Source: Entomortierella parvispora E1425 (lineage: Eukaryota > Fungi > Mortierellomycota). From it: a stretch of 64,000 nucleotides of DNA. This document shows positions 55,308 to 60,148 of the stretch, in pieces. The position numbers were made by a program, and so were the translations under genes. The notes under the pieces are model-generated. The model was not told where the DNA came from. It saw nothing but the letters and a program-made list of their open reading frames with translations, and did no database searches. How positions within the stretch are numbered: position 1 is the first letter of the stretch; every line of letters starts with the position of its first letter. The stretch covers positions 682,001 through 746,000 of the forward strand of contig BQFW01000002.1 of the NCBI GenBank assembly GCA_020891255.1, written 5' to 3'.

Positions 55308-55535
55308 TTACATGCGAGCCATCGACATGGCCTGCATATGACCCATGGCGTTCTTCTGAAGGAGCATCTCGAGGGCATCGGCGTGGCTCATAAGAGCGTG
55401 GGCCTTGTTGACGGCAGCGACATCAGAGGCATTGAGCTGGACCGAAGTTCTGGGGGTCTGCGAGGGGGTGTTGGCAGCCGAGGCAGTCTTGTTCTTCTTG
55501 GAAGAGGAGGATCCGTTGAGCTTGAAGAAAGTCAT
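55308..55535 (-). CDS. Microprotein family copy 1 (75 aa, MTFFKLNGSSSSKKNKTASAANTPSQTPRTS...)
   Basis: About 86% identical in amino acids to copy 4, with several synonymous codon differences. TATAAATA at 55652-55659 (minus strand); the leader ends in ACAAACATG. Confidence 0.85.
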   Translation of the reverse strand: MTFFKLNGSSSSKKNKTASAANTPSQTPRTSVQLNASDVAAVNKAHALMSHADALEMLLQKNAMGHMQAMSMARM

Positions 55536-55813
55536 GTTTGTAATTGTGGGTTGTTTGGGGGATGAGAGTGTTTGTACAGGTGGGTGATGTTTTGATGTTT
55601 GTGTTGTTGAGTGAAGTGTAGAAGAAAGGGATCAGACCATTCACCCGGTCATATTTATATGGATCGAGGGCCAATGGCCCAGTCAAAAACTCAATCCCCC
55701 CCTGGCCTTGCAGTCGTTTCCAGGCGCGCTGTGCTGACAGTTCCTGTGAAAAAAAAAAGATGTTATTCTTAGAAAATTTTTTTTGGCCCATTCTCTGCTG
55801 GGATTCAAAACCT

Positions 55814-55829
55814 GGACTTGAACCGTGCG
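55814..55829 (-). promoter_or_regulatory. 16-nt element CGCACGGTTCAAGTCC upstream of microprotein copy 1 (B-box-like)
   Basis: Identical 16/16 to 59681-59696 upstream of copy 4, in the same orientation relative to each gene. Confidence 0.55.
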
Positions 55830-56790
55830 GGTTCTGTATTTTTCCTTTTGAGTCGGAACGTCAATTACATTCTGACAATGACACTCCGTCGTCCCCGTCG
55901 CTCTCCACTCCCCTTTTGGCATTGAACCCACGGGCAAGGACGGATGAGGACCCAGAGGGGACAGGCGGTTGGGTTCACCGTCCGTTGCGCGATTTTCTTT
56001 AACCAACCCCAGGCCATCGATGAATCGCAGCAAGGAGCTTGGAGGATAGAACGTGGGGAAGGAAATAGGACGACAGTAGTCCCTTCCTCTGTTTCAACAA
56101 ATTGGACGTCTAAACAGCGCCACGTCTTTGGTCGCTCCTCCAATTACCGCGGCATTCCTCTAAAGGGATGAACAACAGAGCAATACAGTATGTACGCGAT
56201 TTCATCAGCAGAGACACAGCGGAGAATGAGTGGAGTAGGTGGTGATGGGCGATGAATGCCCGGCATTCCACCAGTCAACCTTGTATAGCAGGTTGAGCAG
56301 CTTTCCAACAGTGCCAATGAGTAGGCCAAGCTCTTCCCACGAGGCCCAAGGAGTTAACGATGAGTGTGAACAAAAGCGAGGTGGAGTGCAGTACTGTACA
56401 GTACTCAACGGCAATGGTTGTAGCGCACACAGAGAAAAGGAAAAAAAACATTCGCTCTCCAATTTTGGTGCGACCATCATGTCATATCGCGTCAAAAAAG
56501 TTGGCGGCAATAACATCACAGGCACTTCCGGTGTGGGTTGTTGCAAGACTTGACATTTTTCATCACTGTATCTTCAAAAAGTAGGGGGTTGACATTCAGA
56601 CCGTTAGAAAGGTCGAATGGGTAGATTTTTTAATGCAAAAAGATGGTATGGTACAATGTGAACTTGTTGGAAAATGCAATTGACATCGGTAAAGGATGCT
56701 GGTGGTATCGTAGTGAGGACCAATGGATCGATCGCGAGGAGGAAGAAGAGGCCGCTCTCCTCTGGGAAGGTTGGCTGACTGTTTTCTTCT

Positions 56791-56994
56791 TTAGCGGATA
56801 AAGAGACCTGCGGCAGGGTTGGTCATGGTCTTCTTGAAAATCAAGTGCAAAGCCTCATCTTGAGTCAACATCTTGGACTGGCCGGGACGCTGCTCGTTGA
56901 AAGAATTGCGAGGAGTCTGGGAGGGGGTCTGAGAAGGAGTGGTGGCAGCGGATGCTGTCTTGTTCTTGGAGGAGGACTTGAAGAAGGAAGGCAT
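56791..56994 (-). CDS. Microprotein family copy 2 (67 aa, MPSFFKSSSKNKTASAATTPSQTPSQTPRNS...)
   Basis: Shares FFK..SSKNKTASAA.TPSQTPR.S and E-A-L-x-L-x-x-K with the other copies. TATAAATA at 57072-57079 (minus strand); ACAAACATG start context. Confidence 0.8.
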   Translation of the reverse strand: MPSFFKSSSKNKTASAATTPSQTPSQTPRNSFNEQRPGQSKMLTQDEALHLIFKKTMTNPAAGLFIR

Positions 56995-57786
56995 GTTTGT
57001 AGTTGCGGGTGTTTGTTTGGGGCTCGTTGTTTGCGGATGTGGTTTGAGTGGAGGTGGGGCGAGAGGCTCCGTATTTATACAAGTGTCCTGGGAGGGAATG
57101 CCTGGGGTACGGCCCTTCTTCATGGGAACAGCAGAGTTATTCAAAGAGGTCCCTACTGCGGGCCTGCGGGGGGACAAAAGGGCGAAATGAGGGCCGTGAG
57201 AGAGTTTTGCGTTCACTTCCTTTCTGGGCACACATTTACTTGGCTCGAGCATTAGAGACCCGATCAACCGTGTTGTTTTTCCCCCCTTCTTTATTCACGT
57301 CATGTACTGATTCCTCAGCGTCAAGGTTCAAACGTACATGTTTGCACTGGACTTTATGAAGTTTAATGGCAAGGGGAATAAAGAGGAGGGAACTTCAACT
57401 GGAGTCGGGTCCTTCTGGTTGAGCACTTTTACAGTTGTTTGCTAATCGAGATCCTCGGTAGTACACGTATCGTACAGCCAGTACGTGTAGAAAAGTCCAT
57501 GCAGCATCGCCTGGAGCAACGCTTCCTTTGATCACTACATTGCTTCAACAAAATCAGGGCGGGCCAGCTGTGAATGCTTTGTAATCCTTTCGCGAAGGGC
57601 GATAGTTTTTATTGCGCGTGAATTAATGATACAATTGAGTTGTTTTCCATGGAAAAAAATGCTGAAGGGTGAGATGCTGGATTTGATGTGGTATAGGCGA
57701 GAGCGACACCATTTGAAGGCGCTGATCGCGTTTGGAGACGGAGGCTTGTGGAATTGGACCAAAGGGGTGAGAAGGGCTTCCTCTGT

Positions 57787-57992: not shown

Positions 57993-58127
57993 GTTTGTTA
58001 ATTGTGGGTTGGGCGAAGGTCAAAACGGTGAGATTTGTTGTGTTGTTGAGGTTGAAGAATAAAAAAAAAGTGGAGACACTGTGGCGTCTTTTTATATGAT
58101 CCCACCTCCAAGACCACCAATGTTGAA

Positions 58128-58179
58128 GCCAAGGGTGGTCAGGGCGCCAGGTTACCAAAAGAGGCCTGCATCGGCCAAG
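58128..58179. promoter_or_regulatory. Three PacC/Rim101-type GCCARG sites upstream of microprotein copy 3
   Basis: GCCAAG at 58128, GCCAGG at 58146 and GCCAAG at 58174, 30-80 nt upstream of the TATA box. Confidence 0.45.
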
Positions 58180-59680
58180 GCAGAGTAAGAACATTTTAGA
58201 AAAAAGAATGAACTAGAGGAGAATAGACACTGACACTGACACCGCCCCTGTTTCGAACAGTGCGGTATACATACTTTCCTGCACCGCTGAAGCAGTGAGC
58301 AAGTGCAAAAGAGGCCACATCCGGATCTTGGATATTCTTGTCGAGGCAGTCGCACTTTAGAAAGTGAAAAAGCAAGAAGCTGACATGCGCTCGACATGCA
58401 CCTTGAAGCCTCAAAAATAGCTGCACGAGCTGACATTGGGTCCCAGTTCCATTGCCGACATCCCATGCGACTTGGGGCAGAATCATAGACTAATCTACTC
58501 TGCTTGCCCATGCGTACCGGGGCAGACGATACATTTATTCCCCACCTGAGTCTTTTGACGCGAAAGAATGCAATTAGTTGGAGGCACCTTGGGGGCAATG
58601 GTCCTTGGAGCAAAGGAGACGCACCCTTGGCAGAGGAGCACGTACAAAACCTCAGTCCAGATCCCAGTCGGCTCTTCAGGGGTGGGGCAATCCACGTACG
58701 AAGTGGTCTGGCTTTCATTCTCCACTCGACCATATTCTAAGAACGGGCTGACAAAAATCTCCGATTAAAAAAAAGGCCTCATCAGAGATGGCAGCGGTTT
58801 AGTAGGTCGTAGTCCCAGCCCCTGGGCTGCGGGCGCAGAACAACGTTTGACCCTTCATTCATCCTCAGCGCAACACGTTCCCTTGACATGATTCCTAAAA
58901 GAGGACTTGATCCACTAGGACCTTGAAAAAATTATAAAATATCTTCTAGAAGGGAGCACTTCGTCCTTGTGAAGAGCTGAGAGGGACTTGAAAAGTTGAA
59001 TTGCCTCAAGATTGGACTTCTTGTAATTTCAAGAAGAGACCGTTGGAAGATCAATGGCCTTAAGGCTGGCGAGCAATTCTAGTCTATCCCATAAACGTGC
59101 ATCCCGTGAGCATTCTGTTAGGAAGCTGCTTTCCACTGGGGTACTGTGGTTGCCTTCAACGTGAACACGATGAAGTCCATGTCCGCTCAGGTACTTTCGA
59201 CCCAGCGATCAGGGGCACACATTTTCACACGGTGTGGTTTAGAGTGTCGTAATGACACGTCGAAGAGTGTTTGTGAAGTAATGACCACATCATGTCGATG
59301 GCGATCAAGCACGACAAGCGTGAATTCGCTATCTGCCCTCATTTGCCACCTTGCTTGGGTATTTTGACAGGGGGATCTTATCAGAACTCGAAATAAATGA
59401 AGAAAAAAAAGTGGGGATGTGTTCGACAGTGGTGATCTGTCCGCACAGCAACGGCGCCGCTGCGCCAGCCAGTTTTCGTTCTGGCCTCAGCCAGACATTC
59501 TGAACTGGATGAAATAGGTGTCGCCAGTGCCCTGCCTCCTTTGCCCCCACGGGTGTCCCCAGCCTTGACAAAGCTTTTTGCTATTCTTATCCCCGATGCA
59601 AAAAAAAAAAATCTTTTTGGCTTTCACCCGGTGCAACTGGCTCCGCTCGTAAAATATCGTCACTCAATACAACAGTGCTT

Positions 59681-59716
59681 CGCACGGTTCAAGTCCTACT
59701 GGCCCAAGTTCAATCC
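59681..59716 (+). promoter_or_regulatory. 16-nt element CGCACGGTTCAAGTCC plus a second GTTCAATCC upstream of microprotein copy 4
   Basis: Element at 59681-59696, identical to 55814-55829 (minus strand). A second GTTCRANNC match is at 59708-59716. Confidence 0.55.
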
Positions 59717-59923
59717 CAGTTCCTATTGCTAAATGTAAGCAGCCGCAAGTCAAGGCACCAGAAGCTGGCGGGTAATGTCAGCTGAATGGATGCCGTTGGT
59801 ATAAATACGACCCAGGGGTGGCAGTGGCCAGTTCCTTTTTTTAGTCCTCACTCAAACAGCACTTCATCAAAACATCTCCCACCTGTACAAACACTCTCAC
59901 CCCAACCTCCCACAATTACAAAC

Positions 59924-60148
59924 ATGACCTTCTTCAAGCTCAACGGAACCTCTTCCAAGAAGAACAAGACTGCCTCGGTTGTCAACACCCCCTCGCAGAC
60001 CCCCAGAACCTCGGTCCAGCTCAATGCTTCTGATGTCGCTGCCGTCAACAAGGCCAACGCCCTCTTGAACCACCAGGAGACCCTTGAGATGCTCCTCCAG
60101 AAGAACGCCATGGGTCATATGCAGGCTATGTCGATGGCTCGCATATAA
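59924..60148 (+). CDS. Microprotein family copy 4 (74 aa, MTFFKLNGTSSKKNKTASVVNTPSQTPRTS...)
   Basis: Paralog of copy 1 in inverted orientation. TATAAATA at 59800-59807, with the same 117-nt TATA-to-ATG spacing as copy 1 and a near-identical leader (CCCACCTGTACAAACACTCTCA...CCCACAATTACAAACATG). Confidence 0.85.
   Translation: MTFFKLNGTSSKKNKTASVVNTPSQTPRTSVQLNASDVAAVNKANALLNHQETLEMLLQKNAMGHMQAMSMARI

Follow-up and report, generated by a model that had tools for sequence, protein, structure and literature searches.

A conserved Mortierellaceae microprotein family with its core gene cluster between RPS19e and pacC in Entomortierella parvispora

The kinase and phosphatase regulators of the ENSA/ARPP-19/Igo1, PKI and inhibitor-1 type are among the closest known counterparts of the small proteins described here, being of the same size class, likewise predicted to be disordered, and provided with one near-invariant phosphorylatable Ser/Thr motif that includes kinase-specificity residues. 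ENSA and Igo proteins are defined by the motif FDSGDY, and PKI by the pseudo-substrate RRNAI. Hydrophilins and LEA-like proteins resemble the present family in being small, hydrophilic, disordered and multi-copy, with apparently very abundant mRNA. DUF2406 (PF10295) and Con-8 (PF28480), the latter a conidiation-specific protein, are also small fungal proteins without known molecular function, in this case Ser/Thr/Pro-rich and from ascomycetes. The family analysed here differs from the ENSA- and PKI-type regulators in that it shares no sequence similarity or Pfam match with them, is taxonomically restricted and occurs in arrays; neither FDSGDY nor RRNAI is present in the family sequences that were read. 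It differs from hydrophilins and LEA-like proteins in possessing a strict linear motif and in being basic and not rich in Gly or charge repeats, again with no Pfam match.

DUF2406 and Con-8 are the nearest named language-model clusters for copies 1 and 2, but shuffled sequences often exceed the scores in question (0.55-0.70), and membership was rejected; with an E-value cut-off of 1 neither family matched any of the four copies, nor was either among the families listed for 35 members with a cut-off of 10, or among the listed 25 of the 28 families matched by 110 members in hmmscan with the same cut-off. No Pfam family was assigned to the four copies or to the sets of 35 and 110 members, and the only recurring matches were sub-threshold ones to the disordered region of vertebrate P33MONOX (PF15302; 12 of 110 members, best E 0.006, profile positions about 147-181). 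These alignments cover the KNKTASAA..TP..TPR segment, about 35 of the 291 profile positions, and copy 2 reaches 12.7 bits against a gathering threshold of 27, so we read the similarity of this low-complexity S/T/P stretch as compositional and not as homology. Profile searches of the PDB returned nothing meaningful, all feature and structure neighbours in the ESM Atlas stayed below chance-level scores, and a literature search found nothing on the family. It is thus, as the original prediction had it, a family without a name, newly defined from its motif and without a Pfam or PDB relative.

The window, i.e. the whole stretch of 64,000 nucleotides that was analysed, contains four intronless ORFs of this family between positions 55308 and 60148, three of them intact and one frame-changed, flanked by a ribosomal-protein gene (RPS19e) and pacC. 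Both the ORF list and the family HMM place them exactly where they had been predicted. Copy 1 (55308-55535, minus strand, 75 aa, C-terminus ...GHMQAMSMARM, E 2e-29) and its inverted paralog, copy 4 (59924-60148, plus strand, 74 aa), belong to subtype 1, copy 2 (56791-56994, minus strand, 67 aa, C-terminus ...NPAAGLFIR) to subtype 2, and copy 3 (57787-57992, minus strand) to subtype 3, with both of its frames matching the HMM (3e-10 and 3e-6). The other two intact copies have E-values of 4e-28 and 1.5e-16. Of the 1581 ORFs that a six-frame reading of the window yields, the HMM matched these four copies only, the next ORF having an E-value of 0.28. A 62-aa ORF at 16554-16742, the best non-member in both HMMs and collinear with the family in alignment, was considered as a fifth member, but with E 0.28-0.47 its membership is not established.

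In copy 3, the first 29 residues are family-like, after which a different frame (E 2e-12 with the subtype-3 HMM) continues to the family-typical end ...HSLMSKAIAGRCGPSIL and the stop codon. The break lies in a C-run, CCCCT, at 57907-57911. Intact orthologs are present in loci L003, from Gryganskiella, and L001; a search for an unbroken version in the same strain or a close one yielded no candidate. Either copy 3 has recently become a pseudogene or the assembly contains an error at this homopolymer, and the gene may be dead.

The members of the family are 60-75 residues long, with a pI of about 10, a GRAVY of -0.3 to -0.8 and mostly disordered chains according to prediction. Their N-terminal motif, FFK..KNK(T/S)xSAxx(T/S)PxxTPRxS, is near-invariant; in 38 full-length homologues, K14, N15, K16, T17, S19, T23, P24, T27, P28, R29 and S31 do not vary at all. 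All four copies carry the pattern by which we recognize members, M-x-(F/L)-F-K ... K-N-(K/Q)-(T/S)-x-S-A-x-x-(T/S)-P-x-x-T-P-R-x-S in a protein of 55-80 residues. There are three old subtypes, which have this motif in common and differ in their C-terminal helices, with the tails GHMQAMSMARM in T1, NAAxGPFIR in T2 and LHxLMxKAxxGxxGPSIL in T3; the tail patterns by which the subtypes are recognized, GHMQAMSMAR(M/I), NxAAGxFIR and GxxGPSIL, and the T2-T3-T1 gene order are all present in the window. An AF2 model (mean pLDDT 62) leaves residues 1-35 without secondary structure and predicts three short helices thereafter.

An exhaustive HMMER profile search retrieved 123 representative clusters from 1.84 billion proteins, and a second, broader profile search gave 144 matches. 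In this census, which had been suggested together with the original prediction, every named match of both searches comes from a genus of Mortierellaceae. All members are deposited as 'hypothetical protein', and several have been mis-merged by gene callers. The order MFS, RPS19e, T1(-), T2(-), T3(-), T1(+), pacC is identical in Gryganskiella cystojenkinii, including a positional ortholog of copy 1; the T2-T3-T1 core recurs in Linnemannia hyalina, and RPS19e adjoins family genes in two further genomes. Across the six loci that were read, the neighbours are MFS, RPS19e, pacC-type zinc finger, WD40, patatin and chitinase genes. Arrays of the family hold at least 11 copies in 11 kb in E. parvispora and at least 13 copies in 21 kb in Mortierella sp. 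GBAus27b. Hence, what had been described as a local four-gene system beside pacC is instead the conserved core cluster of a Mortierellaceae-wide family, with one gene per subtype and an inverted second T1.

The zinc-finger gene adjoining the cluster does carry a PacC/Rim101-type finger sequence, which bears out its identification as pacC. No evidence was found for a functional link between it and the cluster: the promoters lack the enrichment in GCCARG expected of a PacC/Rim101 regulon, with GCCAAG occurring 13 times in 14 family promoters (8.4 kb in all), where the local background predicts 9.0 (Poisson P = 0.13), and no 6-mer is enriched in them after correction for multiple testing. A TATA box precedes each of the four copies, as had been noticed earlier, namely ATATAAATA at 55652-55660 (minus strand) for copy 1, TATAAATA at 57072-57079 (minus strand) for copy 2, TATAAA at 58091-58096 (minus strand) for copy 3 and TATAAATA at 59800-59807 (plus strand) for copy 4. 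Its distance from the ATG, counted from the start of TATAAA, is 124, 85, 104 and 124 nt, respectively, and not 78-117 nt, a range that was probably measured from a different point. All four copies have ACAAACATG before the start codon. A promoter block of copy 2 (57193-57277, minus strand) is 86% identical over 85 nt to that of its Gryganskiella ortholog, and part of it is also kept upstream of a subtype-2-like gene of E. parvispora. The element GCACGGTTCAAGTCC lies upstream of copy 1 (55811-55828, minus strand) and copy 4 (59682-59699, plus strand), and its core also upstream of subtype-1 genes in three genera; it is B-box-like, and a tRNA or SINE origin was rejected after tRNA and Rfam searches gave no match.

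Protein identity between copies 1 and 4 is indeed about 86%, and DNA identity 91%; the two form a 201-nt inverted repeat with 91% complementarity. Their 3' flanks, taken originally for unrelated, share a conserved 65-nt 3'-UTR block with 82-87% identity (55185-55249, minus strand, preceding an AATAAA signal, in copy 1, and 60208-60272, plus strand, in copy 4), which was recovered from the inverted repeat, by alignment and by blastn (87% over 67 nt). Conservation of regulatory sequence thus extends to TATA, leader, promoter and 3'-UTR blocks. Between copies 1 and 4, dS amounts to 0.20, compared with 0.84 in the paralog pair of Gryganskiella; the two syntenic ortholog pairs give 0.55-0.74 and all four cross-species pairs 0.39-0.74. 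Judged from these values, the two copies appear to have been homogenised by gene conversion in the lineage of the window. The synonymous changes between them are therefore a weaker argument for selection than had been supposed, and the argument is carried instead by the orthologs. Copy 2 and the syntenic Gryganskiella BGZ83_009450 are 88% identical, with dN 0.06 and dS 1.09, which gives an NG86 dN/dS of 0.055; subtype-1 orthologs have 0.16-0.24, and the overall range is 0.06-0.56, while maximum-likelihood values are unstable with sequences so short and dS saturated. The predicted selection on the peptide is thereby upheld, and on these alignments we regard the family genes as real, protein-coding and subject to purifying selection.

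Codon use suggests high expression, with A in 3-6% of third positions in family genes versus 12-16% in neighbouring transporter ORFs. The runs listed for this organism include no RNA run. In libraries of relatives, which were labelled as RNA by guess and in which the summed depth of contigs measures expression poorly, about 400 fragmented contigs add up to a depth of about 1.3e5, and one contig alone has a depth of 25000. The contigs fall on the conserved 5' portion of the coding sequence, and homologues sit at very high depth in short contigs of about 370-450 nt (367-449 nt for three contigs of run X17). From the relatives' libraries and codon use, the family is apparently very highly transcribed, and the gene arrays elsewhere point to a dosage-sensitive, stoichiometric role. 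The strong M. alpina 'predicted protein' promoters might come from such family genes.

Taken together, the explanation that we consider best, with slightly better than even confidence, is a conserved and selected Mortierellaceae family with this locus as its core, and with a mechanism of the phospho-acceptor or docking kind. The mechanism itself is put forward more tentatively, as somewhat less likely than not. The proteins would be made in bulk, and the acid-free stretch K-N-K-(T/S)-x-S-A-x-x-(T/S)-P-x-x-T-P-R-x-S would serve as a short linear motif, acting as a multi-site phospho-acceptor, docking or pseudo-substrate module with two candidate proline-directed sites, one K-x-K-x-x-S and one R-x-S, while each subtype would bind partners of its own through its C-terminal helices. 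Such logic would be akin to that of small heat-stable kinase/phosphatase regulators or of abundant stress-type disordered proteins. The basis for a phosphorylation motif is the invariance of its residues, and the acid-free, basic, hydroxyl-rich N-terminus could be a targeting sequence instead. A more specific form of the proposal, in which a dosage-amplified set of pseudo-substrates or adaptors, like ENSA or PKI in logic but unrelated to them in sequence, uses the invariant multi-site motif to titrate or steer a conserved kinase or phosphatase and the subtypes direct its activity to different partners via their C-terminal helices, is quite unlikely.

High transcript depth in relatives, dosage-type arrays, TATA-type promoters, disorder and hydrophilicity would also suit bulk protectants, that is hydrophilin- or LEA-like proteins for stress, dormancy or cold tolerance, which would work by mass action (shielding, vitrification, condensates) without a specific partner, the N-terminus providing stability or solubility. 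However, bulk protectants usually conserve composition and not a linear motif, whereas this family has a near-invariant motif of 20 residues with fixed S, TP and TPRxS positions; its well-conserved, subtype-specific tails argue for specific contacts, and it has no Pfam similarity to hydrophilin or LEA families. We regard this explanation as unlikely. Still more doubtful is a mitochondrial or other organellar role, with the first 30 residues as a cleavable presequence, an R-2/R-3 site at TPRxS and a mature, helical C-terminal part of 35-45 residues. In 94% of members no acidic residue occurs up to position 25 (median position of the first one, 32), the first 32 residues have a net charge of +4 to +5, the N-terminus is about 45-50% S/T/P, and the variable region begins two residues after an Arg, all of which would fit; but presequences are normally poorly conserved, and here no part of the protein is better conserved than the N-terminus, which contains two to three prolines and has no predicted amphipathic helix in residues 1-35.

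It is very improbable that the proteins are precursors with RiPP-like logic, in which the N-terminus would be a leader recognized by processing or modifying enzymes and the C-terminal part would yield a bioactive peptide upon release. A conserved N-terminus followed by a more variable remainder, multi-copy arrays of sequence variants and very high mRNA levels in relatives are in line with such precursors, but low dN/dS between orthologs shows the C-terminal parts to be conserved and not hypervariable, Kex2-type dibasic repeats and a Cys pattern are missing, and the genes called at the six loci include no recognisable modifying enzyme. As the original prediction had proposed for its four copies, no family sequence that was read has a signal peptide, a hydrophobic N-terminal core or a membrane segment. 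Finally, some features might suggest that the ORFs arose by chance, derive from a transposon repeat, or belong to a conserved non-coding element of RNA or DNA that merely happens to be open: they are short, the frame of copy 3 is broken, and the family is repeated, sometimes arrayed, with identical 31-mers common to different species. This view is largely refuted by dN far below dS in orthologs, reading frames that have stayed open between conserved starts and stops in dozens of genera, biased codon use, stable synteny with single-copy neighbours and searches that matched no transposon domain, tRNA or Rfam entry.

As a subject of study, the locus shows clearly how old subtypes, conserved synteny and gene conversion can combine in a microprotein family confined to one taxon; the near-invariant motif offers a handle for phosphoproteomics, pull-downs and mutagenesis, and the compact TATA promoters with their leaders are possible strong expression parts. 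The Mortierellaceae are a major group of soil and root-associated fungi, and are used industrially to produce lipids. A family restricted to them that occurs in every genus sampled, has been amplified into arrays and apparently ranks with their most abundant transcripts is likely to be of physiological importance to them.

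The four microprotein copies that lie between the RPS19e gene and pacC are real genes, which evolve under selection and are retained in a conserved order. All four intronless ORFs described in the original prediction are present, namely copy 1 (55308-55535, minus strand, 75 aa), copy 2 (56791-56994, minus strand, 67 aa), copy 3 (57787-57992, minus strand, frame-broken) and copy 4 (59924-60148, plus strand, 74 aa). As read from the member sequences, the family comprises three subtypes with a common N-terminal motif and different tails: T1, ending in GHMQAMSMAR[MI] (copies 1 and 4), T2, the commonest type, with ...KMT.(D/E)EAL......NAA.GP(F/Y)IR (copy 2), and T3, with ...AE.LH.LM.KA..G..GP.IL (copy 3). 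When the six-frame ORFs of the whole window that reach 25 codons or more (1581 in all) were scanned with a family HMM, exactly these loci were recovered: copies 1, 2 and 4, with E-values of 2e-29, 4e-28 and 1.5e-16 among them, and copy 3 in both of its frames. This is far beyond chance, the next-best ORF having E 0.28. The top non-member match in both family HMMs, a 62-aa ORF at 16554-16742 on the plus strand (MQSNKNTS...RRVSLEER...ELMSIVMSK...PFAL), aligns collinearly with T3, yet with E-values of 0.28-0.47 it is no more than a candidate member.

ACAAACATG is present at the start codon of every copy, and a TATAAA box begins 85-124 nt before each ATG. Copies 1 and 4, whose coding sequences exhibit 91% DNA identity, also have in common about 65 nt of leader, the TATA region and a 65-nt 3' block (55185-55249 and 60208-60272, 82-87% identity) preceding AATAAA, which contradicts the earlier description of their 3' flanks as unrelated. 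The element GCACGGTTCAA(G/C)T is found in the window upstream of both T1 genes, at 55811-55828 (minus strand) and 59682-59699 (plus strand), and occurs 200-360 nt upstream of T1 genes in three genera, including both of those in Gryganskiella cystojenkinii and the one in Linnemannia hyalina, where it is inverted. It exhibits a likeness to the tRNA B box and gave no tRNA or Rfam match; a conserved element of promoter or TFIIIC type is a possible interpretation.

The first part of copy 3, MTFFKLNGTSSSKKNKTASAAATPVATP, is followed by PRTSLDASRSTNKQMQKESSETLHSLMSKAIAGRCGPSIL* in a different frame; when the copy is aligned with intact orthologs, the break falls within CCCCT (57907-57911), at a position where a single codon should stand. 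The downstream frame fits the subtype-3 HMM as far as its last residues (E 2e-12), and its codon bias is intact. Since, in addition, the length of the contig (~4 Mb) suggests to us a long-read assembly, an assembly error in the homopolymer and a very recent frameshift are equally plausible; no intact, near-identical copy 3 protein is on record.

A search with copy 1 revealed 38 full-length homologues, all of them 'hypothetical protein' entries from genera of Mortierellaceae (Mortierella, Linnemannia, Podila, Gryganskiella, Dissophora, Haplosporangium, Actinomortierella, Entomortierella, Gamsiella and Modicella), except for the two proteins of the window itself and some metagenome or ENA entries without names. 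In their alignment K14, N15, K16, T17, S19, T23, P24, T27, P28, R29 and S31 are invariant, and the C-terminus GHMQALSMARM is conserved. Of two profile searches, one that exhaustively covered 1.84 billion representative proteins yielded 123 clusters at E < 1e-3, and a second, broader one yielded 144 matches; the named proteins sampled or listed in either search all come from Mortierellomycotina, adding Benniella, Lobosporangium and Lunasporangiospora. Pfam and the PDB gave no family or chain for these proteins, and none of their Atlas neighbours is confident, in agreement with the original failure to name a family, nor did a literature search reveal a described family or a paper on them; in the databases they figure only as hypothetical proteins. 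We class it among the amplified microprotein families that are disordered and confined to one taxon.

The locus of G. cystojenkinii runs from an MFS transporter gene through RPS19e, T1(-), T2(-), T3(-) and T1(+) to an 856-aa zinc-finger gene. The order in the window is identical, from the MFS gene (49936-51318) and RPS19e (~53602-54198) through the four copies to a zinc-finger gene, whose first coding exon (62316-62600, plus strand) carries the PacC/Rim101-type C2H2 signature YICQWDSC...HVGRK...LTCRWDKC... (a further 12 protein letters not shown). A C2H2 zinc-finger gene of 846-856 aa with the same faint Pfam match is adjacent to the cluster in Gryganskiella and ~9 kb distant from it in L. hyalina. 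We found no functional link of the family to pacC, and GCCAAG sites are not significantly more frequent than in the background (P = 0.13). L. hyalina has T2(-), T3(-), T1(+) and then a further member that no gene caller has annotated; it is located directly downstream of the T1 gene (L001, the L. hyalina locus, 11254-11673, plus strand; MSLFKISKNKIASAVSTPTQTPRSSLQINASD...GHNQALSLARM) and overlaps the annotated start of a large WD40 gene model. The adjacency to RPS19e recurs in two more genomes, and in Podila, Linnemannia and M. alpina the same tandem order is evident from public gene models in which T3 and T2 are joined. Because the gene order recurs across these genera, the core cluster must be older than their divergence. 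Among the homologue entries, several models (P0040, P0043, P0166 and others) merge T3 and T2 into one protein of 120-130 aa, and Gryganskiella BGZ83_009449 (5203-5531 of its locus, L003) has a spurious intron in place of the true stop, the real product ending in ...SMSRM*.

Substitution rates are NG86 values; maximum likelihood values were unstable owing to saturated dS. Copy 2 and its Gryganskiella ortholog give dN 0.060, dS 1.085 and dN/dS 0.055; the ratio is 0.16-0.24 for T1 orthologs, 0.11 for the T3 orthologs of Gryganskiella and Linnemannia, and 0.29-0.36 for copies 1 and 4. The dS of 0.20 between copies 1 and 4 is much lower than that of the Gryganskiella T1 pair (0.84), and also below those of the two syntenic ortholog pairs (0.55-0.74, or 0.39-0.74 over all four cross-species pairs). 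Window and Gryganskiella have the inverted T1 duplicate at the same position. An old duplication, with gene conversion in the window's lineage, is the simplest explanation. Conservation extends to the promoters: an 85-nt block of copy 2 (57193-57277, minus strand) is 86% identical to its Gryganskiella counterpart and represents a candidate cis-regulatory element, and a 44-nt block of copy 3 exhibits 91% identity. The 34-nt core of the copy 2 block is also present upstream of a subtype-2-like gene of E. parvispora.

Elsewhere the family forms arrays, counted by six-frame HMM scans of fetched loci that provide lower bounds: at least 11 copies of 62-65 aa, alternating head-to-head, in 11 kb of E. 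parvispora BQFW01000008.1 (686-706 kb; L005 1-11300), and at least 13 copies in 21 kb of Mortierella sp. GBAus27b (L006 1-21300). Called genes in the public annotation coincide with only three copies of the former; in the latter, one 63-aa protein is present as three identical copies, and several public models, each 1.3 kb long, seem to combine adjacent copies into one gene.

The conserved 5' coding part is contained in RNA-type libraries of related organisms, three of the four runs being labelled as RNA by guess. In run X19 a single contig, with MNFFK encoded at its loose end, reaches a depth of 25000; X17 has contigs of 367-449 nt, as long as an entire microprotein mRNA should be, and a contig from a soil metatranscriptome (X20) also matches. 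In X16, the depths of 398 fragmented contigs add up to ~1.3e5 for copy 1 and 6.6e4 for copy 4. Such sums reflect expression poorly, and the runs were identified by way of this gene. The family mRNAs are probably very abundant. Third-position A amounts to 3-6% in the copies vs 12-16% in the transporter ORFs of the window, which fits translational selection.

In an AlphaFold2 model (35-sequence alignment; mean pLDDT 62, pTM 0.22), residues 1-35 lack secondary structure and are followed by three short helices (36-46, 51-63 and 66-73). The proteins are basic (pI 10.3-10.6), and their first 32 residues carry a net charge of +4 to +5 with 41-53% S/T/P. Almost all invariant residues are phosphorylatable Ser/Thr or neighbours that set kinase specificity (lysines five and three residues before the first Ser, a proline directly after each of two Thr, and an arginine two residues before the last Ser), a pattern from which we infer that the N-terminal motif could be a multi-site phospho-acceptor or docking motif. 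We tentatively favour a phospho-regulated disordered adaptor or regulator, at somewhat less than even chances. A bulk stress protectant seems unlikely; an organellar microprotein with a presequence, to which one could relate the basic N-terminus (the first acidic residue has a median position of 32 across the family), is more doubtful still, and a leader-core peptide precursor is improbable. With the dN/dS values observed, non-functional copies hardly merit consideration. These readings together do not take up the whole probability, and the rest is assigned to none of them. In a phospho-regulated adaptor, the subtype-specific helices would confer partner specificity; the arrays and the TATA promoters suggest that the role is stoichiometric and dosage-sensitive.
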